Source: Dendrobates tinctorius
Taxonomy: Eukaryota
NCBI RefSeq assembly: GCF_039654945.1
Contig: NW_027361788.1
Coordinates: forward strand, 33,046,001 to 33,110,000
Reading direction: 5' to 3'
DNA length: 64,000 bases
Under the pieces are notes generated by a model. That model was not told the origin of the DNA. It saw only the letters and a list, made by a program, of their open reading frames with translations, and made no database searches. Position numbers and translations under genes: made by a program. Within the stretch, counting starts at the first letter, position 1. The number at the start of each line of letters is the position of its first letter. Positions 1,164-44,914 of this stretch are shown here, piece by piece.

Positions 1164-1737
1164 TAATATAAAGGAACAACCAATTATTACTTATATTAGT
1201 GATCTGCAACCTGGGGCCGACCAGCCATTTCAGAACTACCACTCCCAGCATGCCCTGGGACAGCTGGAGGGCCACAGGTGGCAGAACACGGACTTAAAAG
1301 GATCATTTCTCTGTAAATGCTGAACTGTAAGGTGATCATGTTACGGTCAGATTTATACCTTTCTGTAGGAAGTTGCTGGTTACCTGTAACGTCTCACGTG
1401 TGTGATATAAAGTTTATGGTGCAGAATCCCGGTTTCTGTCTTAGTTGGAACGTGTTGGCTTATTGGGGAGCTGGAGGGCTGTGATTGGAGGGCAAAGTCC
1501 AAAATCAAACATTAAAGAGGTTTCTGGGACGCTTGATCACTTCTCCTTAGGTAAGGCCATCAATTTCAGATCAATGAGGGTCCGACTCCCAGCACCCCCA
1601 ACAATCACCTGATTTAAAGGAGTTTTTCCCGTCATCATAAATGGATTTTGCCGGACAAGCACATTTGCAATTTACTGCTTATTTACATTTTCAGCCGTTC
1701 TTCAGATATCAACACTTTTTTTATTTACAGATCGTTG

Positions 1738-2011
1738 CCTTGGAGACCGACCACTGCTGCTGGATAGCAGAACATGCACAATGCTTACAAGCATTGCTTT
1801 CCTGCTGGCTGGGATCACTGGAGTGGGTCGTTACCTCCTTATCCCGCCACAGCTTCAGGTCAGTGCTTACAAGCTACATAGCAGTGGTGTGGTGGTCGGA
1901 GGGAACCGTACGCTCCAGTGTTGCTGGCCAGCTTCAAAATAACTCAGTAGAAACAAGCTTACAAACACAGTGCATGTTTTGTTGTCCAGCAGCAGCGGTC
2001 GGTCTCCTAGG
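1738..2011. mobile_element. MITE with ~50-bp terminal inverted repeats (second copy ~44092-44365 in the right arm)
   Basis: GGAGACCGACCACTGCTGCTGGA... pairs with ...TCCAGCAGCAGCGGTCGGTCTCC. Confidence 0.65.
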
Positions 2012-4497
2012 AAAACTAATCAATATTAGTCCCGGAAAGCCGAAAATCACAAATAGTGCAATGAGGGGTGTATGGAGCGGGCACAGGGGGGCTCAGGAAG
2101 TAGAATGGCTCCATACATGGTGGGTATCAGCTGTGTTATACAGCCAGCACCTGCTTCCAACAGCAGCGACCAGTGCTAGCTCCGATTGCAGCTGTTATTG
2201 ACTAACAGTGGCACCTAAACTGGTACAGTGGTTTCAGCGCCCACCGCGCAATGCAGGACTACAGTTTTTTCCTTCAATGACCATCTCCCAAAAAATGTAC
2301 TAAAACAGCTATCAAACCATCTAATGCTCCCCAAAATGTTACAATAAAAACTATAGCTCACTTCGCAATAAACTCTTGCACAGCTCCATCAATGTGAAAA
2401 TTGAAAAAAAGTTGAGTCTGGCACCAAAAAAATAAAAAAAATATATATTTTTTTACAAAAGTCAGAATTTTTTTAAGCACTTCAATACAAAAAAATTAGA
2501 AAACCCTTAGGTTTGGTATTGCTATGATCTTACCGACCTGGAGAATCATAGTCCCAGATGTTTTTTAATGTACAATGAACAGTGTAAAAAAAAATGGCAG
2601 CACTTTTTTCCCACTTTTCATCCCGCATTGTATGGTAAGATGAATGGCGTCATTCATAACTACAACTCGACGCCCAATAAATAAGCCCTCATACAGCAAT
2701 GTCAGGTATATGTGAAGGGGAGGAAGAAACAAAACAAAACTGGCTGCGTCTCCGAGGGGTTGTGGTTATAGCTGCAGTACCAGTCACAGCCTATAGACAA
2801 GGGTGGCGCTGATTCTGGGGAAAGAAAAACTATCTGCCTCTATTTTTATTTTCGTAAAAGTAAAAATGTTCTGAAGATAAAAAAAAATGCTGAAGCAGCG
2901 TGTTTCTGGCTGCAAATGGAGCCGCTGTGCCAACCGTTCATTATGGTTTACATTAATTATGTGCCAATTAAAGCAGATCATAAATCTGGCCCGATTCCAT
3001 TCCTCCAGAGTCACACTTGGCTACAGACACAGTGTGCTGTTCCGTCTAAGTTATGATTATATCGTTTCATAGACTGTGTTATTTTCCATGCTGTGTAGTC
3101 CTGCATTTGCTCTGCTGCCACCTGCTGTCCTTTTTCTGCTGCTAATTAATTCTTGCCCATGCCTTTCACATCAGGGTCAGGTCATGCCTTCTTCTTCCTG
3201 CTAGCAGCCATTCTTAGTTTAACTCTCACCCGGGAGAGACACACTTGTACCGAGATGTGAAAGGCATCAGTTTTTCGACCACATTTGCTGCACGATTTGC
3301 TCCACCTTGCTTCACAATTTGCTGTATCACCATTGTTGTTAACATTCTGCACGTCTGGAGAACCTACTGCATTACCAATCATACTCTGTATGTCCAGATT
3401 TCCAAATAAACATGTCTGGACTTCACAGTCCCTGGTGTGTATCATCTCTCTGGACGCTGAACAGCAACAATGGTCCTGTCTGCTCTGCATTGAGGAAACG
3501 GAAGATAGGAATCTCTCCCAGCCCCACTCAAATACACCTCCATTCGCCTCATGTGGCGACAGAACAGTCGAAAAACTGCCTTGAGCCCGGCCAGAATTAC
3601 CCTTACTTCCCTATCCACATGCCTGCGCTCTGCCTGCTCACATACTGCAGCCCTGCCCTGCTAAGAAATTGTCTGCATCGTCACCCCAGATCGCATTGTG
3701 CATAGAGACTCTCTGTATATAATTCCACATTGCTGCAGATTGTCGGACTGCAAAACCCCACAATTCTCCAAAATCAGCTTGGGAATCTCGTCAGGACGTC
3801 TTAACTAAGCTGCTCTGCGATTTCCAGCCCCCAATTCAAAAGTTCAGTTTCTTAAAGAGACAGTGCACCTTAAATCAAAATGGCCAAAAAAGACCCTGCA
3901 GTCTCCCACTGCTGAAACAGAGCAAATACAACCCGATACTGTCCATTATGAAGAGGGGGAAACAGAGCCAGCTTCAGAAACAGGCCAAGACTCACAACCA
4001 GTACGCTCCCTTAAGCCGTTAAAGGTCCTCGAGAACTACCATTCCACGAAGGATGAGTTCAATGACAACCTGGACAACCTATGGGAACGAGTCACCTTCT
4101 TCATGTCAGGCATTCAGCACCACAAAAATGATGCAGCGAGTCTACAGGACACTATAAAACGGCTAGACACGGCCCACGGAAGATACACGAGACTGTCCGC
4201 AAGGTACGTTGCCTACCTAAAAGACTCTAATATTGATGAAGCCTCATCAGAGTTAAGCAAAGCAGATTCCACCGACAGAGAAAAGGAATGCCGCTGTGCA
4301 AGACGTCATAGATAAAGCGGAGCTCCGTATTGCTCATCTTCAAGAATCAATATCTCACAGGTCAGGTTCATCCAAGCACTCTACTCGGTCATACAAGTCA
4401 TCCTGCTCAAAAACTTCAACTCTCAGTGATAGAATCCTAGAGGCCCGTTTAAACGCAGAGCGATCCAAACTTAGACGTTCCTACACAGAAAAGAAAG

Positions 4498-4822
4498 CAG
4501 AGGCCGAAGCCAAGAAAGTAGAAGCGGAGGCCGAAGCCAAGAAAGTAGAAGCGGAGGCCGAAGCCAAGAAAGTAGAAGCGGAGGCCGAAGCCAAGAAAGC
4601 TGAAGCACAGGCAGAATCCAGGAAAGCTGAAGCACAGGCAGAATCCAGGAAAGCTGAAGCACAGGCAGAATCCAAGAAAGCTGAAGCACAGGCAGAATCC
4701 AAGAAAGCTGAAGCACAGGCAGAATCCAAGAAAGCTGAAGCACAGGCAGAAGCCAACAAAGCTGAAACACAGGCAGAATCCAAGAAAGCTGAAGCACAGG
4801 CAGAATCCAAGAAAGCAGAGGC
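4498..4822 (+). repeat. 27-nt in-frame coding tandem repeat (EAEAEAKKV / EAQAESKKA, about 12 units) in BEL gag
   Basis: GAAGCACAGGCAGAATCCAAGAAAGCT repeated; seen in the translation of ORF 4296..5408. Confidence 0.9.
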
Positions 4823-5408
4823 TCAAGCAAGGATTCTTCCAACACAAATGGAGCAAGAAATCGCGCTAGCCGAAGTTAAAATACTCGAGCAGGCATTGAA
4901 TCAAAACCTCGACCCGATTTGCCTACCACCACTGGAAGAAAAGGACCAAGCTGTCCGTACCAGTGATTACGTGCAGAAACAGATATCTGCAGCACACACC
5001 TTCTCCAGCAACGTTCAACTGAACAATGTGGAAATGTCCAAGTCAGCCCAACTTACGGTGCCAGTGTTACGCCATAATGCATCCCCTAAGGATCAACAAT
5101 CATCACAAGACGCACTCCAGTCCATCTCCACAGTTCTGTTAGGAGTCAGATTTCTGCCCCTACTATGCAGGAATCTAGACCCTCACATTCTGCAGTCTCC
5201 TGCTCATTGTCTACTGCAGGAGATATTGCAGAGGAGATTGCCTTGCAGCAACTCTCTCCGGAGGCTAAGTCCTTCTTTCCATCTTCTGAGCATGCTCGTG
5301 GAACGAGTCCCCATTGGTGTTCGGGAGTCAGGTGCTCAGGTCCTGCTCTTATTCCCATTGGTTCAGCTCAGAGTTTTGGAGACTTCCAGAAGGTCCTGTT
5401 TGCTATAA

Positions 5409-5704
5409 GGGTATGTGCACACGTAGTGAAATCTGCTGCGTTTCCGGCTCTGCGGAAACGCAGCAGATTCTGCTGCGTTGTACAGTACCTTTATTTTCAA
5501 TGGAAAAAAAACCGCAGTGCACATGCTGTGGATTTTTTCCGCGGTTTACAATCCACAGCATGTCAATTGTTTGGTGCAGAAACGCTGCAGTTTTACACCT
5601 CATCCATTATGAGGTGTAAAACCGCAGGGCAAAACCGCAGATAAACCGCAGGACTTTTGTCCTGCGGATGTACCTGCGGTTTTCTCTCCAAAATCCGCAC
5701 ACCC
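5409..5704. mobile_element. PIF/Harbinger-like MITE inserted in the Gypsy 5' LTR
   Basis: Absent from the 3' LTR (GCTATAAAAAGTGCG at 7946-7960); TAA TSD at 5406-5408 and 5705-5707; GGG...CCC termini. Confidence 0.85.
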
Positions 5705-6324
5705 TAAAAAGTGCGCATGGCTGTTCCGCCATGCGCTAGTATAGTCATACTTGCTGCTGTGTGTATGTTGATGGATGTATGATCTGGTGAATGACTCATT
5801 TGAAACCCCATTCCTATGATATTACGTCTGTGTGAAGGAATGAGTTATAGCCAGTATTAGCGCCAGCACGCCATTGCTCCACAAGCACACCTGCTAGCGT
5901 CTACATCGCGCCTGCGTTACTGCGGTGTTACTCTGCGGCATTCTCCACGCCGCGCTGCTGTAGCAGCTTCAGTGTGCGTTCGCAGTTGCAACGCTGTTCA
6001 CACAAGTAATTACGGTAGGTCTAGATGGATGTAGTGCCGTCATTTATAACTACTCCGGTGACCACTTACCGCTTGTGTGCCGCTGAGTCCCTGTGTCTCT
6101 AACAGGTTCAGCGTTGTTACATTTATCATTTGTAATAGCAGCTCTGTGAATTCAACAGAGATTGCTTAAGTGCACCTGGGTGATATCTAACCCTGTGCAC
6201 ACTACCGCCAGATTGCTCTTCCCTCACCTAGCAGCGGCTTTAACATCTACTGCACGGTGGACCCCGAGTGGCGAACGCACTTTATTTATATTTTTTATTT
6301 AGTGCCTTCCGCCACTCCTGACAT

Positions 6325-6335
6325 TATACTAGCGC
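6325..6335 (+). promoter_or_regulatory. Self-priming primer-binding site of the Gypsy element
   Basis: TATACTAGCGC just after the 5' LTR is the exact reverse complement of GCGCTAGTATA at 5733-5743 inside the LTR, ~30 nt downstream of the TATA box. Confidence 0.8.
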
Positions 6336-9300
6336 CAGGGTCTGGCTAGTGATGGCAGAACAGCAGCAACTCTTACAGTGCATTCGCCAGCTAGAGGGTC
6401 ACTTGGCCACTCTTGAGAGGGCTCTCTCTGCTGCGCAGTCCACTGAAGCTGCTGTAAATGCACTCACAGATGCGGTTGGTCGCATGTCCATGTCCTCCCT
6501 CGCACCGACAGTTACCCGCCTCCCGTTGCCCGATAAATTTTCCGGTGATGATGCCTCCTGTAGAGGTTTCATCAGCCAGTGCTCAATCCAGCTGGAGCTG
6601 CTGGCTGAGCAGTTCCCTATGTAACGGGCCAAAGTGGCATTTATTCTTTCCCTACTGTCGGGCAAGGCGTTGGAATGGGCTACACCTTTATAGGAGCGTG
6701 GTGACCCCGAGATTCGGACCGCAGCTCACCTGCTAACAGCCATCAAGCAGGTCTTCCTCGGTCCACGGGTCACACACGACACCTCTCTGCAGCTGATTGC
6801 TCTAACCCAGGGATCCCTCTCGGTTAGCTAGTACGCCGTCCGTTTTCGGACACTGGTGTCCGAGCTGGAGTGGTCCGATAAGGACCTTATCCCTGTTTTT
6901 TGGAGCGGTTTAGCCGAGCACGTAAAGGATGCTCTCTCTACTAGAGAGATTCCTGCCAGTTTGGAGGAGTTAATTTCCATTTCTACCCGTATTGACCTCC
7001 GTTTTTCGGAGCGCGGTATGGAGAGTGCTCACTCCAAACGGAGAGTTACTCCGGCTCCCAATTTTTTTGAGCCTCTAGAGCTGCCCGAGCCAGAGGTTCT
7101 ATCCCCAGAGCCCATGGAGGTGTCTCGCGCCATTTTTGAGACACGCCCGGCTCAAGATCCCATTTGCGGTTGTCACCGTCTACACGCTGCTTCTCAGGAT
7201 GACAGCGTTCCGCAATGGTCAGAGTCTGTGTCGGTCGGCGAGACCTTTGTTCTTTCTCGCCTTAGGCCTAAGATTCTCGCCTGGGCGCACGCGTCCAGTG
7301 CGGATGGCCATAGTGGCTATATGCAGACCACGAAACTTCTGGCTGGGTCGTATTGGTGGCCGCACAGGGCTCAGGATGTAAAAAAATTTATTCGGGCATG
7401 CACCTCATGTGCTCGGGATAGCCTTCCCAGATGGAGTGTGGCGACGATCGCCGACACACGACAGTGTTCCACTGTAACTCCGGCTCCCATCGTCTCCCGG
7501 TTGTCCCTTTTGAAATCTGGTGATCTTGCTTCCCCTAACGCCTTCCGTGTGTCCCGGTTGTCTGTGTCACCTACCAGGACACCAGGCTCATCTTCGGACG
7601 AGTGTGAGACCTATGCCACAGTTGGGCACAGGTTGGTGGGTCGGAAGGCTCAGGGAGGAGGGGCCCTAGGAGGAGGGTAATGTTAGGAGTCAGATTTCTG
7701 CCCGTACTATGCAGGAATCTAGACCCTCACATTCTGCAGTCTCCTGCTCATTGTCTACTGCAGAAGATATTGCAGAGGAGATTGCCTTGCAGCAACTCTC
7801 TTTGGAGGCTAAGTCCTTCTTTCCATCTTCTGAGCATGCTCGTGGAACGGGTCCCCATTGGTGTTCGGGAGTCAGGTGCTCAGGTCCTGCTCCTATTCCC
7901 ATTAGTTCAGCTCAGAGTTCTGGAGACTTCCGGAAGGTCCCATTTGCTATAAAAAGTGCGCATGGCTATTCCGCCATGCGCTAGTATAGTCATACTTGCT
8001 GCTGTGTGTATGTTGATGGAAGTATGATCTGGTGAATGACTCATTTGAAACCCCATTCCTATGATATTACGTCTGTGTGAGGGAATGAGTTATAGCCAGT
8101 ATTAGCGCCAGCACGCCACTGCTCCACAAGCACACCTGCTAGCGTCTACATCGCGCCTGCGTTACTGCGGTGTTACCCTGCGGCATTCTCCACGCCGCGC
8201 TGCTGTAGCAGCTTCAGTGTGCGTTCGCGGTTGCAACGCTGTTCACACAAGTAATTACGGTAGGTCTAGACGGATGTAGTGCCGTCATTTATAACTACTC
8301 CGGTGACCACTTACCGCTTGTGTGCCGCTGAGTCCCTGTGTCTCTAACAGGCTCAGCGTTGTTACATTTATCATTTGTAATAGCAGCTCTGTGAATTCAA
8401 CAGAGATTGCTTAAGTGCACCTGGGTGATATCTAACCCTGTGCACACTACCGCCAGATTGCTCTGCCTTCACCTAGCAGCGGTTTTAACATCTACTGCAC
8501 GGTGGACCCCGAGTGGCGAACGCACTTTATTTATATTTAGTGCCTTCTGCCACTCCTAACAAGTTCAAGCCTAGTCATCGAAATCTCCAGAGGTTAAACC
8601 ACAGCTCAACCCTGCAGCAACATCATTCTACCCGGGAACAATTCACCCGTCCACGCCACACAGCTTATACGCCCGAGGGGCACACAAGCTAACACGGTAA
8701 CAAGGAGTGAAGGATCAGACATGTCCGAGTTTGCCTGGTGTATGGTGAGCAAAGATCTAATCAGCACCAGCCTCTCAAGGTTTGACGACTGTGCAGAGAA
8801 CTACAGAGCCTGGAAAGCAACCTTCAAGGCCACCATTGCTGACCTCAACCTATCCGCAGAACAGGAGCTCGACCTCATGGTAAAATGGTTGGGTCCTAAC
8901 TCCACAAACCGTATCAAGAGTCTTCAGACCATCTACGTGGGGCAAGCTGAAGCAGGTCTCGCTGCTGCCTGGCTGAGACTCGAAAGAACCTATGGCAGCG
9001 CTGATGCCATAGAAGAGTCCCTATTCAAGAGACTGCAGAACGTTCCAAGGATTAACCTTAAGGAAGCCCACAAGCTTCTGGACGTAAGCGATCTGCTTAT
9101 GGAGCTGGAACTCGCAAAAAGAGACCCTCGTCTGTCTGGATTATGCTACCTAGACACCGCCCATGGGGTGAACCCAATCATCTCAAAGCTGCCACATAGT
9201 CTGCAAGAGAAGTGGGCAGTATGCGTTTCCAGGTACAAAAGGTCACATGATGTCACCTTTCCTCCGTTCAATCAGTTCTCCAAGTTTGTCAACGAACAGG

Positions 9301-10759
9301 CCCAAATAAGGAACGACCCTAGCCTAGACTTCCTGGAGTCTAACACTACAGCTCCAGCAACACCGTCATCAAGGTATGAAAGCGTCTCACATGGACGCAA
9401 GGACTTGAGAAATAGTGTAAGTGTCAGAAAGACTAACCTGCCACCACCTGCGGTACCCTCCGATAACCAGTACACTATTCCGTCGAGAGATACGTCTTTC
9501 AATCGTGAGTGTCCCATTCACAAGAAACCACACTCGTTGAACAAATGTAGAGGCTTCAGGTCCAAAACCATGCAGGAGCGCAAGAAAATCCTCAGCGAAC
9601 TTGGGGTATGTTTCAAGTGCTGCACCTCATTAGAACACATGGCCAAGGACTGTAAATCTGCCATTAAGTGTGAAGAGTGTCATGGTGACAAACACCCATC
9701 AGCTTTGCATCCAACCTCAGCAACCAGCGATCCAGCAGTCGCAGTTACCTCTAGTCCGGCTACAAGCCATGACGGGGAGCCACAGAATAACGCCAATTCT
9801 ACCACGGCTGTCTCCTGCTCATGCTCAGAGGTATGTGGGGAGAGCCAAAGTGATAAATGCTGTGCCAGGATATGCCTAATCAGAGTTTATCCAGAAGGGC
9901 AACCAGAGAAGGCAGTAAAAATGTATGCCATCATTGATGATCAGAGCAATCGATCCCTAGCTGGACCTAAGTTCTTTGAAGCCTTTAGAATCAAGGGACC
10001 AGCAACGCCATATACTCTGAACACTTGCTCAGGCCGCATAGAGACCAGTGGCAGGAGGGCACAAGGTTTCATTGCTTCTCCTGTCAAGTATGGACTTCAC
10101 AATCCCTTGTGTGTATCATCTCTCCGGACACTGAACAGCATATGGTCCTGTCTGCTCTGCATTGAGGAAACGGAAGGGAGGAATCTCTCCCAGCCCCAAT
10201 CAGCTACACCTCCATTCGCCTCATGTGGGGACAGAACACACGGCATGTGCAGAAGGGATAAGGCTTACTAATTGGGGACACCATGCAGGGCGGTCATGCT
10301 GCTCTGTATAACAAGAGGCCTGTCATTCACCGAGAATCCCAGAAACCAGAGCTGGAGGTAGTTCTGCTCAATATTGCAGTAATCAGACAGTATAAAAATG
10401 CATGCATGAAAAAAAAACCTCATAGTTGCTTTAGACCAGAAACAGCGCCATCTCTGACCACAGGTCATGTCCGGTATTGCAGCTCAGCACCATTGCCGTA
10501 AATAGAGATCAGCTGCAATACCAGACACGACCTGTGAACAGCAGGGGCATTGTTTTTGGAAGAATAAAAATAACCATCTGTTTTTCAAGTTGCATAATAT
10601 CACGGTCCTGCTGCAATTTCACTTAAACGGATGCAGGTTTTCGTGGTCAATGGCTAAATAAATCCTTTTGGTACAAGATATTAAAAAGAATGACATTTTT
10701 CCATCTGTTCCTCTGCTTGTTGTCATTGAATAGGAACCATCATGGTTTATTGGTCACAG

Positions 10760-13495
10760 ATATAATCGTGACAGATGAGTGACGTCACCACTGAGCAGGT
10801 ATAACGTGACAGATGAGTGACGTCACCACTGAGCAGGTATAACGTGACAGATGGGGTGACGTCACCACTGAGCAGACATAACAGGTGACAGATGGGTGAC
10901 GTGACCACTGAGTAGACATAACGGGTGACAGATGGGTGATGTCACCACCGAGCAAATAAAATGGTGACAGATGGGTGACGTCACCACTGAGCAGATATAG
11001 CGGGTGACATGACCACTGAGCAGACATAACAGGAAACAGATGGGGTGATGTCACCGCCGAGCAGATATAGCGGTGACGGATGGGTGATGTCACCACTGAG
11101 CAGATATAACGGTTGACAGATGGGTGACGTGACCACTGAGCAGACATAACGGGTGACAGATGGGTGATGTCACCACTGAGCAGATATAACGGTGACAGAT
11201 GGGGTGAAGTCGCCACTGAGCAGATGTAACGGTGACAGATGGGTTGATGTCACCACTGAGCAGATGTAACGGTGACAGATGGGTGACGTGACCACTGAGC
11301 AGACATAACGGGTGACAGATGGGGTGACGTCACCACTAAGCAGATATAACGGGTGACATCTCCAGTGAGCAGATACAACGGGTGACAGATGGGTGACGTC
11401 ACCACTGAACACATATAACGGGTGACAGATGGGGTGACATCAGCACTGAGCAGATATAATGGGTGTCAGATGGGTGATGTCACCACTGAACAGATATAAC
11501 GGCGACAGATGAGTGACGTCACCACTGAGCAGGTATAACGTGACAGATGGGGTGACGTCACCACTGAGCAGACATAACAAGTGACAGATGGGTGACGTGA
11601 CCACTGAGTAGACATAACGGGTGACAGATGGGTGATGTCACCACCGAGCAAATAAAATGGTGACAGATGGGTGACGTCACCACTGAGCTGATATAATGGG
11701 TGACATGACCACTGAGCAGACATAACAGGTAACAGATGGGGTGATGTCACCTCCGAGCATATGTAACGGTGACAGATGGGTGACGTCACCACTGAGCAGA
11801 TATAACGGTGACAGATGGGGTGATGTCACCACTGAGCAGATATAACAGGTGACAGATCGGTGACTTCACCACTGAGCAGACATAATGGGTGACAGATGGG
11901 GTGACATCAGCACTGAGCAGATATAACGGGTGTCAGATGGGTGATGTCACCACTGAGCAGACATAACGGGTGACAGATGGGGTGACGTCACCACTGAGCA
12001 GACATAATGGGTGACAGATGGGGTGACGTCACCACTGAGCAGACATAATGGGTGACAGATGGGGTGACATCAGCACTGAGCAGATATAATGGTGACAGAT
12101 GGGTGATGTCACCACTGAGCAGATATAACGGTGACAGATGGGAACATCACCACTGAGCAGATATAATGGGTGACAGATGGGAACGTCACCAATGAGCAGA
12201 TATAACGGTGACTGATGGGGACGTCAACACTGAGCAGATATAACGGTGACAGATGGGGTCGTCACCACTGAGCAGATATAACAGACAGATGGGGTGATGT
12301 CACCACTGAGCATATATAACAGTAACAGATGGATGATGTCACCACCGAGCAGATATAACGGTGACAGATGGGGTGATGTCACCACTGAGTAGATAGAACG
12401 GGTGACAGATGGGTGACATCACCACTGAGCAGATATAACGGGTGACAGATGGGTGACATAACCACTGAGCAGATATAACGGGTGACAGATGGGGTGACGT
12501 CACCACTGAGCAGATATAAGGGTGACAGCTGGGGTGACGCTAGCACTGAGCAGATATAACGGGTGACAGATGGGGTGAAGTCACCAACGCAAAGATATAG
12601 CGGTGACAGATGGGGTGACGTCACCACTGAGCAGATATAACGGTGACAGATGGGGTGACGTCACCACCGCAAAGATATAGCGGTGACAGATAGGGTGACG
12701 TCACCACTGAGCAGATATAACGGTGACAGATGGGGTGACGTCACCACTGAGCAGATATAAGGGTGACAGATGGGGTGACGCTAGCACTGAGCAGATATAA
12801 CGGGTGACAGATGGGGTGACGTCACCAACGCAAAGATATAGCGGTGACAGATGGGGTGACGTCACCACTGAGCAGATATAACGGTGACAGATGGGGTGAC
12901 GTCACCACCGCAAAGATATAGCGGTGACAGGGTGACGTCACCACTGAGCAGATATAACGGTGACAGATGGGGTGACGCTAGCACTGAGCAGATATAACGG
13001 GGGTGACAGATGGGTGACGTCACCACTGAGCAGATATAACGGTGACAGATGGGGTGACGCTAGCACTGAGCAGATATAACGGGTGACAAATGGGGTGACG
13101 TCACCACTGAGCAGATATAACGGTGACAGATGGGTGACGTCACCACTGAGCAGATATAATGGGTGACGTCACCACTGAGCAGATATAACGGTGACAGATG
13201 GGGTGATGTCACCACTGAGCAGATATAACGGTGACAGATGGGTGACGTCACCACTGAGCAGATATAATGGGTGACGTCACCACTGAGCAGATATAACGGT
13301 GACAGATGGGGTGATGTCACCACTGAGCAGACATAACGGGTGACGTGACCAGTGAGCAGACATAACGGGTGACGTCACCACTGAGCAGATATAACGGTGA
13401 CAGATGGGTGACGTCACCACTGAGCAGATATAACGGTGACAGATGGGGTGACGCTAGCACTGAGCAGATATAATGGTGACAAATGGGGTCACTGC
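10760..13495 (+). repeat. ~39-41 bp minisatellite, consensus GGTGACAGATGGG(G)TGACGTCACCACTGAGCAGATATAAC(G), about 65-70 units
   Basis: Direct reading; it produces the spurious repetitive ORFs (SVVTSPICHRYIC). Confidence 0.97.
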
Positions 13496-13548
13496 TGGGG
13501 GTTTGTTACAACAGCACCTGGTCCCACACTGCAGGGGCCCCTCCAGCC

Positions 13549-13790
13549 CCAGACCCCGAGTTCTCCAACTTGAGGCTGAGGGTGTCCTCGATGATGCGGT
13601 TGTTCACCTCCAGCAGCATCATTGTGGCTCTGAAATGATTCACCTCACGGAAGGATGAAGCTGCTTCTCGACGTCCGTCAGTGACAGGCAGCCGCTCCCC
13701 GCCCAGACTCTCTGCTTTCCGTGCTACAAGACAGGCAATATGGCGCCTCCCGCTCACTCTTCCGCCGTACAACAATATGGCGTCAGTACG
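13549..13790 (-). pseudogene. ARPC2: Orphan 5' fragment of an ARPC2-like gene (promoter/5'UTR region and first coding exon only)
   Basis: 13622-13549 encodes [25 protein letters not shown] vs vertebrate ARPC2 [32 protein letters not shown] acceptor lies 7 nt before the ATG; there is GG instead of GT where the exon is expected to end; no downstream ARPC2 exons were found. YY1-like CGCCATATT x2 and ETS CGGAAG lie upstream. Confidence 0.8.
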
Positions 13791-15890: not shown

Positions 15891-32340
<16,450 letters not shown>

Positions 32341-33826: not shown

Positions 33827-35995
33827 TCATATTCTGTTTTGCACCGGCCTAGTTATTGGCGTACTGGTTGCGGCCTGCGTCCTTTTTTGGATATGTCCAA
33901 GTAACAAGTCCAGACCTTTCTCCAAAACCAAGGTCAGCGTCTCCTGCTTATTCTTTGTAAAGCGTGCCAGTACATAGGGGGTCACCGAAGACTTGTCAGC
34001 CGGGCGTCCAATGCCAATCAGGAGTCTGATCATTGTCTGCCAAGGAAGAAAGAGAAAAACACAAAGTCTTCATTACCGAATCCCGGTAATGAAAGGTGGG
34101 CAAATATGGGCTCCAGAACTTACGTCTGATTTCAGGTGGTCAATGCAGGAACGGACACCATTGTGGCCCCTAGAAAATACAGGAAGCAGCCAAGGTCAGA
34201 ATACACATCATGTGGGTATAGCTTACAAGCTACAAGCTATCACCCACCAAAACAGGGATCAGACACTTAAAATAATCATTAAACAGTTAAAGTTCAAAGA
34301 TTTATAGATGTCAATAATTTGATTCAGTATTTATTGAGGAAGCCTGAGAGTCCTGCTCCTCCCACACGGTCTGAGCTGTCAATCACTGGCTGGGTGGGTG
34401 GAGCAAGGACTCCCACATTCTCTATAAATCCTAAAATAAATAGTATTAAGTCACAGAAAATAGATCTTCTCAAGCTCAGCTTGTCGTCTATGCAATGCTG
34501 CTGTGAATAGGGGGCAGGGCGAGTCCTCTAAAGTTGGCCAAGTGGTCTGCATTTCACTCAATAACGGACCAGATACCTCGCGCTCCCTCCGAGCTTCAGA
34601 GTCACCTTCCCCAGAGACTTGTCCAGTTCATCATGCAGTAGATAGATATTCTCAGGGGTCAGGCGGAACTTTCCAGCTGGGGAATAAAAATCCAAATAAG
34701 ATTATCCAACAGTAATTATCCCAAATAATAATAATAAACTTTGCAACCAAAAAATGTCAGTGATTATTGAGACCATAAATCAGAAATCATAGAAACTGAA
34801 GATGGTAAACGGGATGCTGCAGAACATCAACACTTACACTGAGCCAGAACAGAGCCAGCCTATAACAGGAACCCCATAACAAGGCCAGCAAGTCCCTCTA
34901 TGAAAACCAACAGTGATGGATTAAAGACAAAAAACAAAAACCACAGGATGCAGAGTTCCCTCATTACAAACCCAACGTGGAACAAGACCTCGCTATCCAA
35001 GGCAGCTGGTACAAGTGTCCCTATAACAGTAACTGTCTCCAAAGGATGCAGAACTAGGGGACTTATGTACATCCTAGATCTATGCCCAAAAGGGGTCTGC
35101 TGGCTCAGTTAGGGAGTTCATATGATGGCTTAAACTGCCATGAAGGGGGTGCCAGCTCGACCTGCCATGGGGGGGGTGAGACCAGAAAACAGCTCAATCT
35201 GCCATGGGGGGGTACCAGATGACAGTTCGATCTGCCATGGTGGCACCATATGCCAGCTTGATCTGCCATGAGGGGGTGCCAGATGCCAGCTCGATCTGCC
35301 ATGGGATGGGGGGGGAGAACCAGATGCCGGCTTGATCTGCCATGGGGGGGGGGAAGGGAACCAGATGATGGCTCTATCTACCATGGGGGTGCCAGATGCC
35401 AGCTTGATATGCCATGGGGGCACTGTTGTCTCATGTAGGTGACAAGTACCCCTCTTACATGAAGTGATTATTGACCTCACCAGCATTGGCCACACTGGTC
35501 CCATTAACATTCATAAACTGTCGAGGTTTTATCAGGACTAGATGGAGGCCATCAAACTGGGCGGTGACAAGATCGGCTCCCGTCTGTCTGTCTGTCTGTC
35601 TGTCTTTCACTGATCGGCAACATTGAGCCTCCCCGCCAGCTGATTAATGGCGGTCATGCCCACACTGTGCCTGGTGCCAGACATGCCATTATTGCCCAGT
35701 CCGACCACCTACACATAGAAGACAGTATAAAACATGTTACATTACACCAGATCACAAACTCACATGAAATACAGAGACACTTAGGGGACATGTGCTCCCC
35801 GGTAACACATCACACGGGGGGCAGCTTCCCATACAAACATGGCAGACAAGTATGGTTACAGTATGTCAAATACACCACTGTGAATAGTAATAAGCTCACC
35901 ATAAAGAGCCGCCCCCTGGTGGGACCCGCACTGGCTCCATGACTCATACACCGACCCAAGCGGAGACTGCACACGGCAGTCACTGACTGCAACAT
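33827..35995 (-). pseudogene. PTRH1: Peptidyl-tRNA hydrolase 1 homolog, unprocessed 5-exon copy with disabling lesions in exon 2
   Basis: Exons 35995-35900, 35708-35481, 34676-34577, 34169-34124, 34036-33827. Motifs VVGLGN, TRHSVG, FMNVNG, HDELDK, GGSARGHNGVRS, RLLIGIGRP. TGA at 35609-35607 where the homolog has Trp; (AGAC)6 at 35605-35582 shifts the frame and (AGAC)4 would restore it. Confidence 0.88.
35138..35420. repeat. Degenerate ~35-45 bp G-rich tandem repeat in PTRH1 intron 2
   Basis: Repeated (CAGATGCC)AGCTCGATCTGCCATGGGGG units. Confidence 0.75.
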
Positions 35996-37175
35996 AGTCC
36001 TCTACCAACATGGTGGAAAGCAGCTGACAACTTCCGGGTCATGTGACTGACAGTCACTGATGAGGCTTCATGATGTGATCCCTGTGTGCAGTACTACAGA
36101 GAGAAATGTATCGTGCAGAGAGAACATCGTAGTGTTGTGTGTCAGAAGGGAGAGCGAACCCTGCTGGTGGAAAATAAAATTACACCTACAACGCCTAATG
36201 TGACAGATGAGTAGTGTTAAGCGATACTTTCCGATATTGAGAAATATCGGATTGGACCGATACCCAAAAAGTATCGGGTATCGCCGATTCCGATACCAGA
36301 AGCCCCATGCAAGTCTATGGGACAGAAATATCGGAATTAAAAAAAACCCTTCCTTACTTGCACATCCAGTTGGGGGGGGAGTGTGGGCGGACACTGTGCG
36401 TGTCTGTGTGTGCGGGCGGGATCTGTACGGGCCTCTCGGGGGTTGTGTGTGTGTGTGCAGGTATCATCCGGTGGGACTACAAGTCCCTTTGGGGGATGCC
36501 TGCTACAGTGACAGTGATTGACACATTAGCCAATGATGGGACAGTAGTAGTCCCATCATCCGGCTAATGTGTTGAATGTAAAAAAAAAAACCATACATAC
36601 TACATACATAAAACATGCTAGACATACAACATACATGCTACATACATACTACATACAATACATTCATATAGACATACAGTACATATAACAGAGTACATAC
36701 TTACCATCACTTGTCACTTTGTTCCCCGAAGCCAGTGTCATCTTTAAAAAATATTAAAATAACAAACAACCGATATACTCCCTGATCCGCAGAAATCCAC
36801 TAGTGTCCCACGACGATCTCCCGTGGAGGACAGCAGCATCAGCTGATGCGACTGCTCTCTAGGGGCCCCAGGAATACAATGACGGGAGGTAGGTATCCTT
36901 CCGCACTGTATTCCTCCGCCACTGTAAGAAAATAGTCCCTAGTCTCACTTTTGGCATTGCTGTGTGAGAAAGTTCCCACGCAGCTCTTGCCATAAAGTGA
37001 GACCAGTGAACTATAGTAACCTCTCAGTGATGCACTGCAGGAGATCGTCGAGGGACACTCGTGGATTTCTGCGGATCAGGGAGTATATTGCTTGTTATTT
37101 TAATATTTTTTAAAGATGACACTGGCTTCGGGGATCAAAGTGACAAGTGATGATGAGTATGTACTCTATGTTATA

Positions 37176-38778
37176 CAGTGGGGCAAAAAAGTATTTAGTC
37201 AGTCAGCAATAGTGCAAGTTCCACCACTTAAAAAGATGAGAGGCGTCTGTAATTTACATCATAGGTAGACCTCAACTATGGGAGACAAACTGAGAAAAAA
37301 AAATCCAGAAAATCACATTGTCTGGTTTTTTTTCATTTTATTTGCATATTATGGTGGAAAATAAGTATTTGGTCAGAAACAAGCAATCAAGATTTCTGGC
37401 TCTCACAGACCTGTAACTTCTTCTTTAAGAGTCTCCTCTTTCCTCCACTCATTACCTGTAGTAATGGCACCTGTTTAAACTTGTTATCAGTATAAAAAGA
37501 CACCTGTGCACATCCTCAAACAGTCTGACTCCAAACTCCACTATGGTGAAGACCAAAGAGCTGTCAAAGGACACCAGAAACAAAATTGTAGCCCTGCACC
37601 AGGCTGTGAAGACTGAATCTGCAATAGCCAACCAGCTTGGAGTGAAGAAATCAACTGTGGGAGCAATAATTAGAAAATGGAAGACATACAAGACCACTGA
37701 TAATCTCCCTCGATCTGGTGCTCCACGCAAAATCCCACCCCGTGGGGTCAGAATGATCACAAGAACGGTGAGCAAAAATCCCAGAACCACGCGGGGGGAC
37801 CTAGTGAATGAACTGCAGAGAGCTGGGACCAATGTAACAAGGCCTACCATAAGTAACACACTACGCCACCATGGACTCAGATCCTGCAGTGCCAGACGTG
37901 TCCCACTGCTTAAGCCTGTACATGTCCGGGCCCGTCTGAAGTTTGCTAGAGAGCATTTGGATGATCCAGAGGAGTTTTGGGAGAATGTCCTATGGTCTGA
38001 TGAAACCAAACTGGAACTGTTTGGTAGAAACACAACTTGTCGTGTTTGGAGGAAAAAGAATACTGAGTTGCATCCATCAAACACCATACCTACTGTAAAG
38101 CATGGTGGTGGAAACATCATGCTTTGGGGCTGTTTCACTGCAAAGGGGCCAGGACGACTGATCCGGGTACATGAAAGAATGAATGGGGCCATGTATCGTG
38201 AGATTTTGAGTGCAAACCTCCTATCAGCAAGGGCATTGATGATGAAACGTGGCTGGGTCTTTCAACATGACAATGATCCAAAGCACACCGCCAGGGCAAC
38301 GAAGGAGTGGCTTCGTAAGAAGCATTTCAAGGTCCTGGAGTGGCCTAGCCAGTCTCCAGATCTCAACCCTATAGAAAACCTTTGGAGGGAGTTGAAAGTC
38401 CGTGTTGCCAAGCGAAAAGCCAAGAACATCACTGCTCTAGAGGAGATCTGCATGGAGGAATGGGCCAACATACCAACAACAGTGTGTGGCAACCTTGTGA
38501 AGACTTACAGAAAACGTTTGACCTCTGTCATTGCCAACAAAGGATATATCACAAAGTATTGAGATGAAATTTTGTTTCTGACCAAATACTTATTTTCCAC
38601 CATAATATGCAAATAAAATGAAAAAAAACCAGACAATGTGATTTTCTGGATTTTTTTTTCTCAGTTTGTCTCCCATAGTTGAGGTCTACCTATGATGTAA
38701 ATTACAGACGCCTCTCATCTTTTTAAGTGGTGGAACTTGCACTATTGCTGACTGACTAAATACTTTTTTGCCCCACTG
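37176..38778 (+). mobile_element. Full-length Tc1 DNA transposon
   Basis: ~200-bp TIRs, TA TSD; nearly identical to 26535-28138 in the opposite orientation. Confidence 0.95.
37543..38562 (+). CDS. Tc1 transposase, open 339-aa ORF (DD34E)
   Basis: Paired-like HTH N-terminus; catalytic motifs [13 protein letters not shown] and [11 protein letters not shown]. Confidence 0.92.
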
Positions 38779-40145
38779 TATGTACTGTATGTCTATATGA
38801 ATGTATTGTATGTATGTTGTATGAATGTAGTATATATGTAGTATGTATGTAGTATGTATGTATGTTGTATGAATGTAGTATATATGAAGTATGTATGTAG
38901 TATGTATGTATGTTGTATGAATGTAGTATATATGTAGTATGTATGTATGTTGTATGAATGTAGTATATATGAAGTATGTATGTATGTTGTATGAATGTTG
39001 TATATATGTAGTTTGTATGTATGTTGTTTGTACTATGTATGTTTTTTTTATTTTTCTTTTATTTTTTACATTCAACACATTAGCCGGATGATGGGACTAC
39101 TACTGTCCCATCATTGGCTAATGTGTCAATCACTGTCATTGTAGCAGGCATAGCCCGATGGGACTTGTAGTCCCATCGGACGATGCCAGCACACACACAC
39201 AACCCCCGGCAGGCCCGTACAGACCCCCGGCAGCCCGCACAGACCCCCGGCAGGCCCGCACAGACCGCGCATCATGATGACATCATTTCAGCAGCCAATC
39301 ACAGCCACAACACTGGCTCATTGCATTATGGGAACTTCCGATTCCGGTATCCGATATTGTAAAAATATCGGTACTCGGTATCGGAATTTCGATACAGCGA
39401 ATATCGGCCGATACCCGATATTTGCAGTATCTGAATGCTCAACACTAGAGATGAGACATATACCGAGAGATAAGCTAGAGACAGATTAGATATGGGATGG
39501 GGACTGCAATACAGTGGGAGGAACCGCAGCAGCTCAGCCACGAAATGGAGACCCTGCAATGTTACAGAGCAGGGGGACAAGTGCTGAGGAGCAGAGGGCT
39601 GAAAAGTCACCAACTTTCTAGTGACTCCATAACTGCCCAGACGTCCTCTGGTATAATATCAGGACCAGGGCCAGTTTTAGGCAAAGTTTAAAATGGGGCC
39701 CCAAATGCTAACATATTGCACATCACACAGAAGCATTTCGGTTGTAGTTACATGCGCTGAGTTCAGGCCGCTAAACGAGTGTGATCGACAATATTGAAGT
39801 CGTTCAACACTTGTTTCCCGGCCTCTTTCCACCGTCTGAGAAAGAATGATGGGAACAGAACGATCACTAATGGATCACTAACAGATCAACATACAGTATC
39901 GTGTTATCAGCAGCACATCTACAGTTTACACTCCATAGTCCTCCATATAATATAATGTCCCCCATAGTCCTCCATATAGTATAATATACTCCTCAGTCCT
40001 CCATATAGTAAAATACACTCCTCATAGTTCTCCATATAGTATAGTCAAGGGTGGATTCAGGGTAGCCAGGGCCCCGGGCTGTTCAGATTCTGTGGGCCCC
40101 GGGGTCAAGTGACAAACTGCATACTACAGTCCAGTGCGTACTCAC

Positions 40146-41067
40146 CAAACGACAGTATGTTCCCCTCTTTGTCCAATTTCATCTGTGAGCAGGAAAGTAC
40201 AACATTCACCGACAAATCACTGACATTAGTATTAAAGACAATATTGTATAAAAGTAATAAACTAAAAGCCCTATGTTCAGACACAAATTAATTCCAGTGC
40301 AGATTTTCCTGTGGATTTTCCCTCTAGCAGACTGCACACGGTAAAGGGAAAACGTGTGCTGAATCCATACCAGAAAAGGTGGGCCATATTATATGCACAG
40401 GGGATTATCTGGGAAACTTACCACGGAGAACACTGGAGCCACACTGGCCAACGTGGTCTGAGACGTGTCGGAATGCGTGTGCCGGGATAACGGACCTGAA
40501 ACACACAGGTTGAGAGTTACTGAACAAACACTGGCATCTGAACATCCATCATTAGGTGTGGGCTGAGATGTCGCTTGTTTCTAATGCTGGATCAATAAAG
40601 GATATTTGGATTTTAACACCAGAATAGATTTTTTTTCACCTATGATTTATGGATCGGGTCCAAAGGGCACTGCTGACTGCTGGGAATGTGAACTCCGATT
40701 TATGCTTTTTAATGGCAATTTCATTCATCCAACTTTCACAGTTCAAACAGGCGGCAGCGTCTGGACCAGGAGTGACCACCTCAGATTATGTGAGCGTACA
40801 CCGCAGCCAGCGAGAACGAGCGCCTATTGTACAGACCCTACCGACAGTCAAGTGAGCACAATGCGTCATTAGAGCGCACACAGTCATTCCTTCAGTGCTA
40901 TGCATCACCATTCCTTTACTCCGGCCAGGTATTGGAAAGTACGATACTAAAGTTGCTTGTTTATCCCCACCAGACTGGACAACCCCTTTAAACAGCCGGC
41001 CTACTTGTTGCCGGTGGTCTAACACTGCGTAGCGTAAGCGCTGTATAAGAACCAGTGCTGCTTCCTC
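40146..41067 (-). pseudogene. MRS2: Orphan internal exons of MRS2 (mitochondrial Mg2+ channel)
   Basis: Exon 40495-40422 (74 nt, PLSRHTHSDTSQTTLASVAPVFSV) and exon 40182-40146 (37 nt, MKLDKEGNILSF), both AG/GT-bounded, match human MRS2 SDVSQATLASVAPVFTV-TKFDKQGNVTSF. A phase-compatible 63-nt upstream exon 41067-41005 is possible but less certain. No start exon or later exons were found. Confidence 0.85.
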
Positions 41068-41169
41068 CTGTGTACAGAGATTACTGGGTGCAGGAGTACG
41101 GCGAAATGTGTACAAAACAGAGAAGACACCCGTGCTGCAAGGGGTTAACCGTCACCCTGGACTCCTGCT

Positions 41170-42201
41170 ACCTCTGTCACCCGTTATGTCTGTTCAGTGC
41201 TGGCGTCACCCCATCTGTCACAGTTATATCTGCTTAGTGGTGACGTCACCCATCTGTCACCGTTATATCTGCTCAGTGGTGACGTCACCCATCTGTCACC
41301 GTTATATCTGCTCAGTGGTGACGTCACCCATCTGTCACCGTTATATCTGCTTAGTGGTGACGTCACCCATCTGTCACCGTTATATCTGCTCAGTGGTGAC
41401 GTCACCCATCTGTCACCGTTATATCTGCTCAGTGGTGACGTCACCCATCTGTCACCGTTATATCTGCTCAGTGCTGGCGTCACCCCATCTGTCACCGTTA
41501 TATCTGCTTAGTGGTGACGTCACCCGTCTGTCACCGTTATATCTGCTCAGTGGTGATGTCACCCATCTGTCACCGTTATATCTGCTCAGTGGTGACGTCA
41601 CCCATCTGTCACCGTTATATCTGCTCAGTGCTGGCGTCACCCCATCTGTCACCATTATATCTGCTCAGTGGTGACGTCACCCCATCTGTCACCTGTTATG
41701 TCTGCTCAGTGGTGACATCTCCCATCTGTCACCCGTTATATCTGCTCAGTGGTGACGTCACCCCACCTGTCACCCGTTATGTCTGCTCAGTGGTGACATC
41801 TCCCATCTGTCACCCGTTATATCTGCTCAGTGCTGATGTCACCCCATCTGTCACCCATTATGTCTGCTCAGTGGTGACGTCACACATCTGTCACCCGTTA
41901 TATCTGCTCAATGGTGACATCACCCATCTGTCACCGTTATATCTGCTCATTGCTGACGTCACCCCATCTGTCACCGTTATATCTGCTCATTGCTGACGTC
42001 ACCCGTTATGTCTGCTCAGTGGTGACATCACCCATCGGTCACCCTTTATATTTGCTCAGTGGTGACGTCACCCATCTGTCACCCATTATATCTGCTCAGT
42101 GGTGACGTCACCCCATCTGTCATCCGTTATGTCTGCTCAGTGGTCACCCATCTGTCACCCGTTATATCTGCTCAGTGGTGACATCACCCCATCTGTCACC
42201 G
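41170..42201 (-). repeat. Second array of the ~40-bp minisatellite (about 25 units), inverted relative to 10760-13495
   Basis: TGTCACCGTTATATCTGCTCAGTGGTGACGTCACCCATC repeats. Confidence 0.97.
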
Positions 42202-42204
42202 TAA

Positions 42205-42555
42205 GGGTGGTTTCACATTAGCGTTTCAGGCAGCAGCGTCGGCCTGCGCACGGCCGACACTAAGCCCCGCCCCCCTGCCACACCTCCTCCGGTAGCTCCG
42301 CCTGTGGGAGCATGACGCTGCATGCAACCCCTATCTTTAGCACTGGGGACGCAGGCCGTGCGCAGGTATGCTTTTGGCGGCGCATGCGTCCTTTTGACGG
42401 TGCACCGAGCGCACCAAATTGCAACAGGTTGCGTTTGGCGCTGGTCGGCGCACCGTCAAAAGGATGCATGCGCCGCCAAACGCATACCTGCGCACGGCCT
42501 GCGTCCCCAGTGCTAAAGATAGGGGCCGCAGGCCGCATAGAGCGTCATGTGCCCA
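42205..42555. mobile_element. Truncated Harbinger-like MITE with a ~200-bp internal palindrome (42328-42525)
   Basis: TAA|GGGTGGTTTCACA start; CCCTATCTTTAGCACTGGGGACGCAGG... pairs with ...CCTGCGTCCCCAGTGCTAAAGATAGGG; absent from the left arm. Confidence 0.65.
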
Positions 42556-42559
42556 TCTG

Positions 42560-44914
42560 GAACCAATAAACCATGATGATTCCTATTCAATGACAACAAG
42601 CAGAGTGACAGTTTGAAAACTGTCATTCTTTTTAGTATCTTGCACCAACAGGATTTATTTAGCCATTGACCACGGAAACCTTCATCCGTTTAAGTGAAAT
42701 TGCAGCAGGACCGTGATATTATGCAACTTGAAAAACAGATGATTATTTTTATTCTTCCAAAAACAATGCCCCTTCTGTTCACAGGTCGTGTCTGGTATTG
42801 CAGCTGATCTCTATTTACGGCAATGGTGCTGAGCTGCAATACCGGACATGACCTGTGGTCAGAGATGGCGCTGTTTCTGGACTAAAGCAACTATGAGGTT
42901 TTTTTTTTTTTCATGCATGCATTTTTATACTGTCTGATTACTGCAGTATTGAGCAGAACTACCTCCAGCTTTGGTTTCTGGGATTCTCGGTGAATGACAG
43001 TCCTCTTGTTATACAGAGCAGCATTGCCGCCCCACATGGTGTCCCCAATTAGTAAGCCTTTTCCCTTCTGCACATGCCGTGTCTGTAGCCAAGTGTGACT
43101 CTGGAGGAATGGAATCGGGCCAGATTTATGATCTGCTTTAATTAGCACATAATTAATGTAAACCATAATGAACGGTTGGCACAGCGGCTCCGTTTGCAGC
43201 CAGAAACACGCTGCTTCAGCATTTTTTTTTTATCTTCAGAACATTTTTACTTTTATGAAAATAAAAATAGAGGCAGATAGTTTTTCTTTCCCCAGAATCA
43301 GCGCCACCCTTGTCTATAGGCTGTGACTGGTACTGCAGCTATAACCACAACCCCTCGGAGACGCAGCCAGTTTTGTTTTGTTTCTTCCTCCCCTTCACAT
43401 ATACCTGACATTGCTGTATGAGGGCTTATTTATTGCGGGTCGAGTTGTAGTTATGAATGACGCCATTCATCTTACCATACAATGCGGGATGAAAAGTGGG
43501 AAAAAAGTGCTGCCATTTTTTTTTTTACACTGTTCATTGTACATTAAAAAACATCTGGGACTATGATTCTCCAGGTCGGTAAGATCATAGCAATACCAAA
43601 CCTAAGGGTTTTCTAATTTTTTTGTGTTGAAGTGATTAAAAAAATTCTGACTTTTGTAAAAAAATATATATTTTTTTTATTTTTTTGGTGCCAGACTCTA
43701 CTTTTTTTCAATTTTCACATCGATGGAGCTGTGCAAGAGTTTATTGCGAAGTGAGCTATAGTTTTTATTGTAACATTTTGGGGAGCATTAGATGGTTTGA
43801 TAGCTGTTTTAGTACATTTTTTGGGAGATGGTCATTGAAGGAAAAAACTGTAGTCCTGCATTGCGCGGTGGGCGCTGAAACCACTGTACCAGTTTAGGTG
43901 CCACTGTTAGTCAATAACAGCTGCAATCGGAGCTAGCACTGGTCGCTGCTGTTGGAAGCAGGTGCTGGCTGTATAACACAGCTGATACCCACCATGTATG
44001 GAGCAATTCTACTTCCTGAGCCCCCCTGTGCCCGCTCCATACACCCTCATTTGTGATTTTCGGCTTTCCGGGACTAATATTGATTAGTTTTCCTAGGAGA
44101 CCGACCGCTGCTGCTGGACAACAAAACATGCACTGTGTTTGTAAGCTTGTTTCTACTGAGTTGTTTTGAAGCTGGCCAGCAACACTGGAGCGTACGGTTC
44201 CCTCCGACCACCACACCACTGCTATGTAGCTTGTAAGCACTGACCTGAAGCTGTGGCGGGATAAGGAGGTAACGACCCACTCCAGTGATCCCAGCCAGCA
44301 GGAAAGCAATGCTTGTAAGCATTGTGCATGTTCTGCTATCCAGCAGCAGTGGTCGGTCTCCAAGGCAACGATCTGTAAATAAAAAAAGTGTTAATATCTG
44401 AAGAACGGCTGAAAATGTAAATAAGCAGTAAATTGCAAATGTGCTTGTCCGGCAAAATCCATTTATGACGACGGGAAAAACTCCTTTAAATCAGGTGATT
44501 GTTGGGGGGTGCTGGGAGTCGGACCCTCATTGATCTGAAATTGATGGCCTTACCTAAGGAGAAGTGATCAAGCGTCCCAGAAACCTCTTTAATGTTTGAT
44601 TTTGGACTTTGCCCTCCAATCACAGCCCTCCAGCTCCCCAATAAGCCAACACGTTCCAACTAAGACAGAAACCGGGATTCTGCACCATAAACTTTATATC
44701 ACACACGTGAGACGTTACAGGTAACCAGCAACTTCCTACAGAAAGGTATAAATCTGACCGTAACATGATCACCTTACAGTTCAGCATTTACAGAAAAATG
44801 ATCCTTTTAAGTCCGTGTTCTGCCACCTGTGGCCCTCCAGCTGTCCCAGGGCATGCTGGGAGTGGTAGTTCTGAAATGGCTGGTCGGCCCCAGGTTGCAG
44901 ATCACAAATATAAG
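42560..44914 (-). repeat. Right arm (unique part) of the large inverted duplication, carrying the empty BEL target site
   Basis: Reverse complement of 1190-3032 plus 10244-10755; reads CTACAGA-CACGG-CATGTG uninterrupted across ~43071-43088. Confidence 0.95.

Follow-up and report, generated by a model that had tools for sequence, protein, structure and literature searches.

A stretch of 64,000 nt from the genome of Dendrobates tinctorius (contig NW_027361788.1, positions 33,046,001 to 33,110,000), here referred to as the window and the frame of all coordinates given without a label, carries the genes CFAP157 and PTRH1 between two long arms in inverted orientation, each of which leads inward into one and the same 40-bp minisatellite. 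Next to the right arm lies a Glyco_transf_25 gene (COLGALT/CERCAM-like), for which we use the label GT25. The subject of this analysis is the pair of arms, their origin, and the arrangement of the genes between and beside them. The window was compared with itself and with the CFAP157 loci of four other frogs, namely Ranitomeya variabilis (L001), R. imitator (L002), Bufo bufo (L003), and Leptodactylus fuscus (L004). Sequence identity of CFAP157 places the window in a dendrobatid close to Ranitomeya.

When the window is aligned with itself, the segment 1190-3030 matches 44914-43079 in reverse orientation, with differences at 17 of 1828 sites, and past a 7.2-kb interruption (3031-10237) the alignment continues from 10238-10753 to 43082-42562, with differences at 24 of 519 sites. 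These two segments constitute the outer and inner parts of the left arm (+ strand), the outer of which is orthologous to L001 5881-7557. The right arm (42555-44914, - strand), delimited by the same self-match and by its orthology with Ranitomeya, is unbroken. The left minisatellite (10757-13496, + strand) consists of about 70 units and stops within a unit, and the right minisatellite (41173-42202, - strand) consists of about 26 units in inverted orientation. At the boundary between the right arm and its array there is a hairpin-like insertion (42203-42554) with inverted arms of 109 nt at 86% identity, which the left arm does not have. An initial annotation, made from the letters of the sequence, had described an inverted pair of arms each ending inward in the same 40-bp minisatellite, and the self-alignment confirms this description.

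Inward of both arrays, no homology between the two sides was found, and the alignment of the left array with the right one is uninformative, giving 84–89% identity whatever the register. The minisatellite unit holds a perfect palindrome, GTGACGTCAC, which includes a full cAMP response element (CRE) site; the window contains 42 exact copies of this palindrome compared to 0.04 expected. A Pfam search with the open reading frames (ORFs) of the arms gave no match, nor did an exact look-up of an arm ORF. Rfam, applied to the window outside 46025-46061, yielded no family at the gathering threshold and only sub-threshold hairpin matches in the right-arm insertion. No further full copies of the arm were found within the window and the four outgroup loci.

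The roughly 28-kb block between the arrays contains a fragment of ARPC2, CFAP157, PTRH1, and a fragment of MRS2. CFAP157 is complete, with nine coding blocks on the + strand (15891-32337) that have no stops and align end to end with the CFAP157 of R. variabilis (P0194) at 81–98% identity. The size of this gene varies among frogs, spanning about 110 kb in the aromobatid Anomaloglossus baeobatrachus compared to 10–16 kb in Ranitomeya, Bufo, Leptodactylus, and the window. The first exon of PTRH1 (- strand) and the beginning of the second are intact, but further on in exon 2 (~35600-35630), TGG has changed to TGA and a (GACA)n run is 8 nt longer than in R. variabilis; these changes disable the gene in this assembly. 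The two genes make up an ancestral CFAP157(+)-PTRH1(-) block (15716-36205, + strand), which is collinear with L001 9838-23851 and has received lineage-specific insertions, namely a retroelement with a reverse transcriptase (~20.0-23.7 kb) and a Tc1-like element (26531-28142).

The ARPC2 fragment (13548-13622, - strand) is a piece of exon 1 encoding residues 1-25 (E = 7e-4) and lies about 50 bp from the left array. The MRS2 fragment (40410-40511, - strand) resembles exon 1, its 34 residues corresponding to residues 59-92 of human MRS2 (E = 7e-4), and lies about 660 bp from the right array. A second MRS2-like ORF (40108-40287) proved unsupported, with no PDB match, and motif searches for further MRS2 exons found none. 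The content that the initial annotation had placed between the arms is upheld with respect to the ARPC2 fragment, the intact CFAP157, the broken PTRH1, and one MRS2 exon-1-like piece, and fails only with respect to the second MRS2 piece.

GT25, with its 3' flank and body at 45794-53900 on the - strand, is collinear with the outgroups and lies on the strand opposite to CFAP157. Its exons lie at 47.5–53.9 kb on the - strand. The L001 segment 728-5416 aligns in reverse to the GT25 flank at 50462-45805, and the GT25 exons of L004 align in reverse to 52117-47488, with open and well conserved reading frames. Six small sequencing runs from other samples each contain almost exactly half of the sampled words in the segment 42560-48500, a pattern that we infer would fit the last exons of GT25 and a long 3' untranslated region ending near an AATAAA at ~45040.

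The origin of the arms is clarified by the comparison with the outgroups. Both R. variabilis and R. imitator have one arm followed by one 40-bp minisatellite (1.8–3.9 kb in length; L001 8045-9824 and L002 5945-9840) between the 3' end of GT25 and the promoter of CFAP157. The single Ranitomeya arm is collinear with the copies in the window over its full 2.36 kb, and its flanks are collinear on both sides. The left arm and array match this L001 segment in forward orientation. For the right arm and array, together with the sequence beyond them (45805-50462), the match is to the L001 succession of GT25 flank, arm, and array read in reverse. The minisatellite is common to the window and Ranitomeya and was not found in the Bufo and Leptodactylus loci. 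In Ranitomeya, the array directly adjoins the promoter of CFAP157, a gene of the sperm flagellum.

One part of the arm, approximately 300 bp in length (2772-3040; 43026-43338), also aligns with sequences 1.3–1.6 kb upstream of CFAP157 in Bufo (L003 8330-8664) and Leptodactylus (L004 8438-8752). It represents a conserved non-coding element with a core of about 170 bp that is nearly invariant across Dendrobatidae, Bufonidae, and Leptodactylidae. The copy in the right arm (43026-43338) is intact and the copy in the left arm (2772-3030, then 10238-10293, + strand) is cut in its core by the insertion of a long terminal repeat (LTR) element. The element is rich in TAATTA-type motifs. Because the arm is single-copy at the orthologous site in Ranitomeya and its core is conserved in Bufo and Leptodactylus, the arms are old orthologous intergenic DNA containing a conserved non-coding element and not the termini of a mobile element.

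The order of genes in Leptodactylus and in both Ranitomeya species is GT25(+)-CFAP157(+)-PTRH1(-), which is the ancestral order. The order in the window is left arm, left array, a segment designated X, CFAP157(+), PTRH1(-), a segment designated W10, inverted right array, inverted right arm, and GT25(-). A comparison of synteny with other frogs, suggested by the initial annotation, thus places the CFAP157-PTRH1 block in reverse orientation relative to GT25 when measured against three outgroup loci, with GT25 being the sole copy in view and the left neighbour of the block lying outside the window. These data lead us to propose, with a probability of roughly 0.8, that the arms are paralogues of the GT25-CFAP157 intergenic DNA and its minisatellite, generated by a lineage-specific inverted duplication, with CFAP157-PTRH1 flipped relative to GT25. 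Most likely, the duplication went together with an inversion of the block of about 28 kb. We give a true inversion slightly better than even odds, and the remainder is shared between a larger duplication, considered below, and more complex histories.

The limits of the homology between the arms, 1190 and 44914, are secondary and do not mark the true end of the duplication, because the left copy matches the ancestral sequence for another 22 bp (1168-1189, + strand; L001 5857-5880 and L002 3557-3583), whereas on the right side approximately 456 bp of ancestral sequence (L001 5425-5880) adjoining the arm have been replaced by 879 bp of unrelated sequence (44915-45793). The left copy is interrupted further out by a repeat inserted at a TTAA (1-1167, ending in ...GGGGTTAA at 1167), which continues beyond the left edge of the window; both Ranitomeya species carry an unbroken ATATTAATATAAAGG at this site. 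Bases 1-231 of the repeat are found again at 57477-57705 with 83% identity. The earlier suggestion that the outer ends are masked by insertions holds for the TTAA repeat on the left and the 879-bp replacement on the right, but the label of a Penelope-like insert does not, as neither a hammerhead nor a reverse transcriptase was found for 44915-45793. The outer flanks are unlike each other (…ATTATTA on the left and …CCTGTGT on the right) and show no target-site duplication, and no transposase belongs to the arms, in agreement with what had been noted before.

The inner junctions can be compared with the ancestral arrangement base by base. In both Ranitomeya loci, nothing separates the minisatellite from the homologue of the window sequence from ~15716 onward. 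Read on the reverse strand, the right array ends with ...GACAGAGG TAGCAG, compared to ...GACAGAGG GAGCAG followed by CGTGCC in Ranitomeya. The right array has therefore kept the ancestral last unit and about 6 nt (TAGCAG) of the flank on the CFAP157 side, after which it joins W10 (39668-41172), a segment that has no counterpart at the Ranitomeya loci and that holds the MRS2 exon-1-like fragment. The ancestral sequence on the CFAP157 side begins at ~15716 with GTAAGCAC, and a few bases occur on both sides of the break, as the ~6 nt that follow the right array also start the sequence at ~15716. The left array breaks off in the middle of a unit and is followed by X (13497-15715), a segment that Ranitomeya does not have and that contains the ARPC2 fragment and nested inverted-repeat elements (14126-15234). 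As the right array keeps the ancestral end and the left array stops within a unit, the inner end of each duplicated copy falls within the minisatellite or at its edge.

Past PTRH1, the last visible ancestral sequence is 39449-39667 (+ strand; L001 23853-24079, 81% identity), and 36206-39448 consists of transposable-element insertions, including a Tc1-like copy at 37172-38781. X and W10 may be filler DNA from the rearrangement, or they may have been captured later at a fragile array. With respect to the flanks, the right copy keeps the GT25 side except for the 456-bp replacement, and the left copy is oriented towards CFAP157 as in the ancestor, across the 2.2 kb of X. One of the two options raised in the initial annotation was a rearrangement-prone palindromic duplication involving the minisatellite, and it fits both the flipped orientation of the block relative to GT25 and the position of the inner ends.

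The arms differ from each other by 0.93–4.6% compared to 10–14% from Ranitomeya, which indicates that the duplication arose in this lineage after its split from Ranitomeya. The divergence between the arms is uneven: it rises from 0.93% in the outer part to 4.6% in the inner part, a significant difference with p = 4e-7 by Fisher's exact test. The inner part does not evolve faster, as the divergence of the arms from Ranitomeya is 10–11% in the inner and 12–14% in the outer part. Polarization of the differences in the inner part with the Ranitomeya sequences assigns 11 derived states to each of the two copies.

The step in divergence coincides with the private insertion of an LTR element. This insertion, at 3031-10237 (+ strand), is a BEL/Pao-like retroelement found in the left arm only, with a target-site duplication ACAC at 3027-3030 and 10238-10241; the right arm represents the empty site. 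Pfam gave a weak match to DUF1759 and a match to Integrase_H2C2. Nested inside is a Ty3/gypsy-like element (~5137-8556) with a target-site duplication AGTTC. A long ORF of the BEL/Pao-like element also contains a 27-bp tandem repeat of about 12 units (4495-4816), which encodes a lysine-rich peptide repeat. The LTRs of the outer element differ at 13 of 154 sites (8.4%) and those of the nested element at 23 of 874 sites (2.6%), and both pairs exceed the divergence of the outer arm (p = 9e-8 and p = 0.001, respectively). The insertion must postdate the duplication, yet its LTRs are more diverged than the outer arm. The simplest reading of this discrepancy is that gene conversion between the arms has been continuing, that the outer arm was homogenized last, and that the insertion bounded the conversion tract. 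On this reading, the 4.6% divergence of the inner arm provides only a minimum age; it is about equal to the 4.4% that separates R. variabilis from R. imitator in the same segment.

As for the mechanism, we lean narrowly towards a scenario that starts with a break, or the collapse of a replication fork, at the end of the minisatellite nearest to CFAP157 and with a second break past PTRH1. The segment between them would have been rejoined in reverse orientation and the breakpoint sequence duplicated. This may have been a single-step event involving staggered or sister-chromatid breaks or template switching, or it may have taken two steps, with recombination between the copies of a small inverted duplication as the second. 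The foreign DNA with the 5' ends of ARPC2 and MRS2 at the inner junctions would represent filler or a later capture. Afterwards, each arm would have gained its private insertions while gene conversion went on, latest in the outer 1.8 kb. A bolder variant, which we consider doubtful, attributes all five odd junctions to one germline replication accident at the minisatellite, in which template switches would have copied the intergenic DNA backward and pasted in promoter-proximal pieces of two unlinked genes, ARPC2 and MRS2. Such a single accident would be a chromoanasynthesis-like event that became fixed naturally in a lineage of vertebrates. In this variant, the inverted repeat so formed may still be flipping the CFAP157-PTRH1 block in living populations.

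Several points weigh against the duplication with inversion as proposed here. The left neighbour lies outside the window, and if a second copy of GT25 were located there, nothing would be inverted. The left minisatellite is separated from CFAP157 by the 2.2 kb of foreign DNA in X, and the left array is without its terminal unit. Under the simple staggered-break model, the left minisatellite should still meet CFAP157 at an unbroken ancestral junction, so extra events or a more complex origin would have to be assumed. The duplicated length of at least 3.4 kb compares with a maximum of only about 1.9 kb among the inversion-associated duplications of Drosophila yakuba (Ranz et al. 2007, PMC1885836). 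With respect to timing, the dating by the LTRs of the outer element relies on only 154 aligned bases.

The first of these points bears on the possibility that there was a larger inverted segmental duplication and no inversion, the left side being the original locus and a copy of GT25, arm, and minisatellite (at least 11 kb) having been placed in reverse past PTRH1, for example by fold-back replication. The left copy matches the ancestral sequence outward as far as it is visible (1168-1189), the order of left arm, minisatellite, and CFAP157 is the ancestral one with X inserted, and on the right, collinearity of the copy with the outgroups extends over 11 kb or more, across GT25. However, this history requires an independent insertion of X exactly at the boundary of the minisatellite, and no second GT25 is visible in the window; the exons of the visible one are open and conserved as those of a sole copy would be, although a duplicate could look alike. 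We regard such a duplication as a tentative alternative, less probable than the inversion. An artefact of the assembly, in the form of a false inverted duplication or a misoriented middle segment, appears improbable. It is true that 1.8 kb at 99% identity could mislead an assembler on orientation and that the four runs covering the stretch best all derive from a single sample, perhaps the one that was assembled. On the other hand, the copies differ by 41 substitutions, by private insertions of 7.2 kb and 0.35 kb, and in array length and inner junctions, and a collapsed or mirrored assembly would not yield such differences.

The other option of the initial annotation was a giant foldback or Pack-like transposon with long terminal inverted repeats, which would have carried the gene block and the captured fragments. 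There is a superficial likeness in the long inverted arms that end in tandem arrays around gene fragments, but the hypothesis is contradicted by the presence of arm and array as single-copy orthologous intergenic DNA in two Ranitomeya species and by the conservation of the core element in two other frog families. CFAP157 and PTRH1 are still in their ancestral neighbourhood, the arms have neither a target-site duplication nor a transposase, the Tc1-like copies being separate small elements, and relatives offer no empty site, as the arm itself is present at the orthologous site, and within the window and the four outgroup loci there is no sign of a repeat family. We therefore hold this explanation to be very improbable. 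Equally hard to sustain is an origin by two independent insertions of a common dispersed repeat carrying the minisatellite, even though a part of the arm (~10441-10584) occurs three times in the Bufo locus and points to old repeat debris in the arm. Each copy retains an ancestral flank (the GT25 side on the right, the outer 22 bp on the left), the two copies are mutually closest, and collinearity with the single Ranitomeya copy extends over all 2.36 kb, all of which contradicts separate insertions.

Other repeats in the window deserve mention in their own right. A pair of Tc1/Sleeping-Beauty-like elements (26531-28142 and 37172-38781), unrelated to the arms, is itself arranged in inverted orientation; the copies are 1.6 kb long, 98.6% alike, and bounded by 210-bp terminal repeats. 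Both are absent from the Ranitomeya loci. The copy at 37172-38781 has an uninterrupted transposase ORF of 339 aa (37543-38562) with the domains HTH_Tnp_Tc3_2, HTH_SB, and DDE_3, and because the ORF is uninterrupted the family may have been active recently. Near the right edge of the window (58.6–64.0 kb), a satellite with a period of 389–399 bp adjoins a telomere-like (AGGGTT)n array (62700-63014). The same satellite family is present in the PTRH1 intron of R. imitator (L002 21878-25647), which makes it a mobile or dispersed satellite.

The inverted duplication of the GT25-CFAP157 intergenic DNA, with the probable inversion of the enclosed genes, is a vertebrate case, taken from a very large genome, that is cleanly polarized and in which the breakpoints can be placed to the exact base. 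A minisatellite can, as seen here, mark the site of breakage in a rearrangement by which DNA is both duplicated and brought into a new order. It further suggests caution in dating duplications by the identity of their arms, as gene conversion can make a duplication look younger than the insertions it contains. Through the rearrangement, a non-coding element of deep conservation became present twice, and a retroelement later split one of the two. Leads on position effects and on the origin of filler DNA are offered by this doubled element, by the 5' portions of two unrelated genes found at the junctions, and by the coinciding defect of PTRH1. Unusual for an event of this kind are the gene 5' fragments at both junctions, the doubling of the conserved element, and the presumed conversion step at a private insertion.

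The arrangement can be related to several known systems. The palindromes of the human Y chromosome are inverted segmental duplications that undergo gene conversion between their arms. The likeness consists in long inverted arms around a unique spacer, in arms that look younger than their history allows, and in a patchy identity that fits conversion tracts; the difference is that the arms in the window are short (2.4 kb and the array) and that one of them is interrupted by a 7-kb insertion, apparently the limit of the latest homogenization. Replication-based rearrangements of the type known as fork stalling and template switching or microhomology-mediated break-induced replication (FoSTeS/MMBIR) produce templated insertions and, in humans, duplication–inverted triplication–duplication (DUP-TRP/INV-DUP) structures. 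Here too there are an inverted duplication, unrelated DNA at the junctions, and a repeat array as a plausible site of fork stalling. Foldback (FB) and Pack-type transposons share with the window the inverted arms with tandem repeats and the gene fragments between them, but differ in that the arms in the window are orthologous intergenic DNA, that there is neither a target-site duplication nor an empty site, and that the "cargo" genes are in their ancestral position.

The closest parallel is found in Drosophila, where inversions with inverted duplications of formerly unique sequence at their ends have been documented; Ranz et al. (2007, PMC1885836) attributed them to staggered breaks of isochromatids or sister chromatids and subsequent end joining. 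Just as in those inversions, a breakpoint sequence that is single-copy in the outgroups is now present in inverted orientation at both ends of a segment, here one that is reversed relative to GT25, and only one of two breakpoints is duplicated, as was the case in 12 of the Drosophila examples (PMC1885836). The window differs from them in that at least 3.4 kb are duplicated, that the breakpoint lies at a minisatellite, and that kilobase-scale foreign DNA with 5' fragments of genes is present at both inner junctions. In the light of these comparisons, the locus is a well-resolved further example of a chromosomal rearrangement of a known kind and not a giant mobile element.

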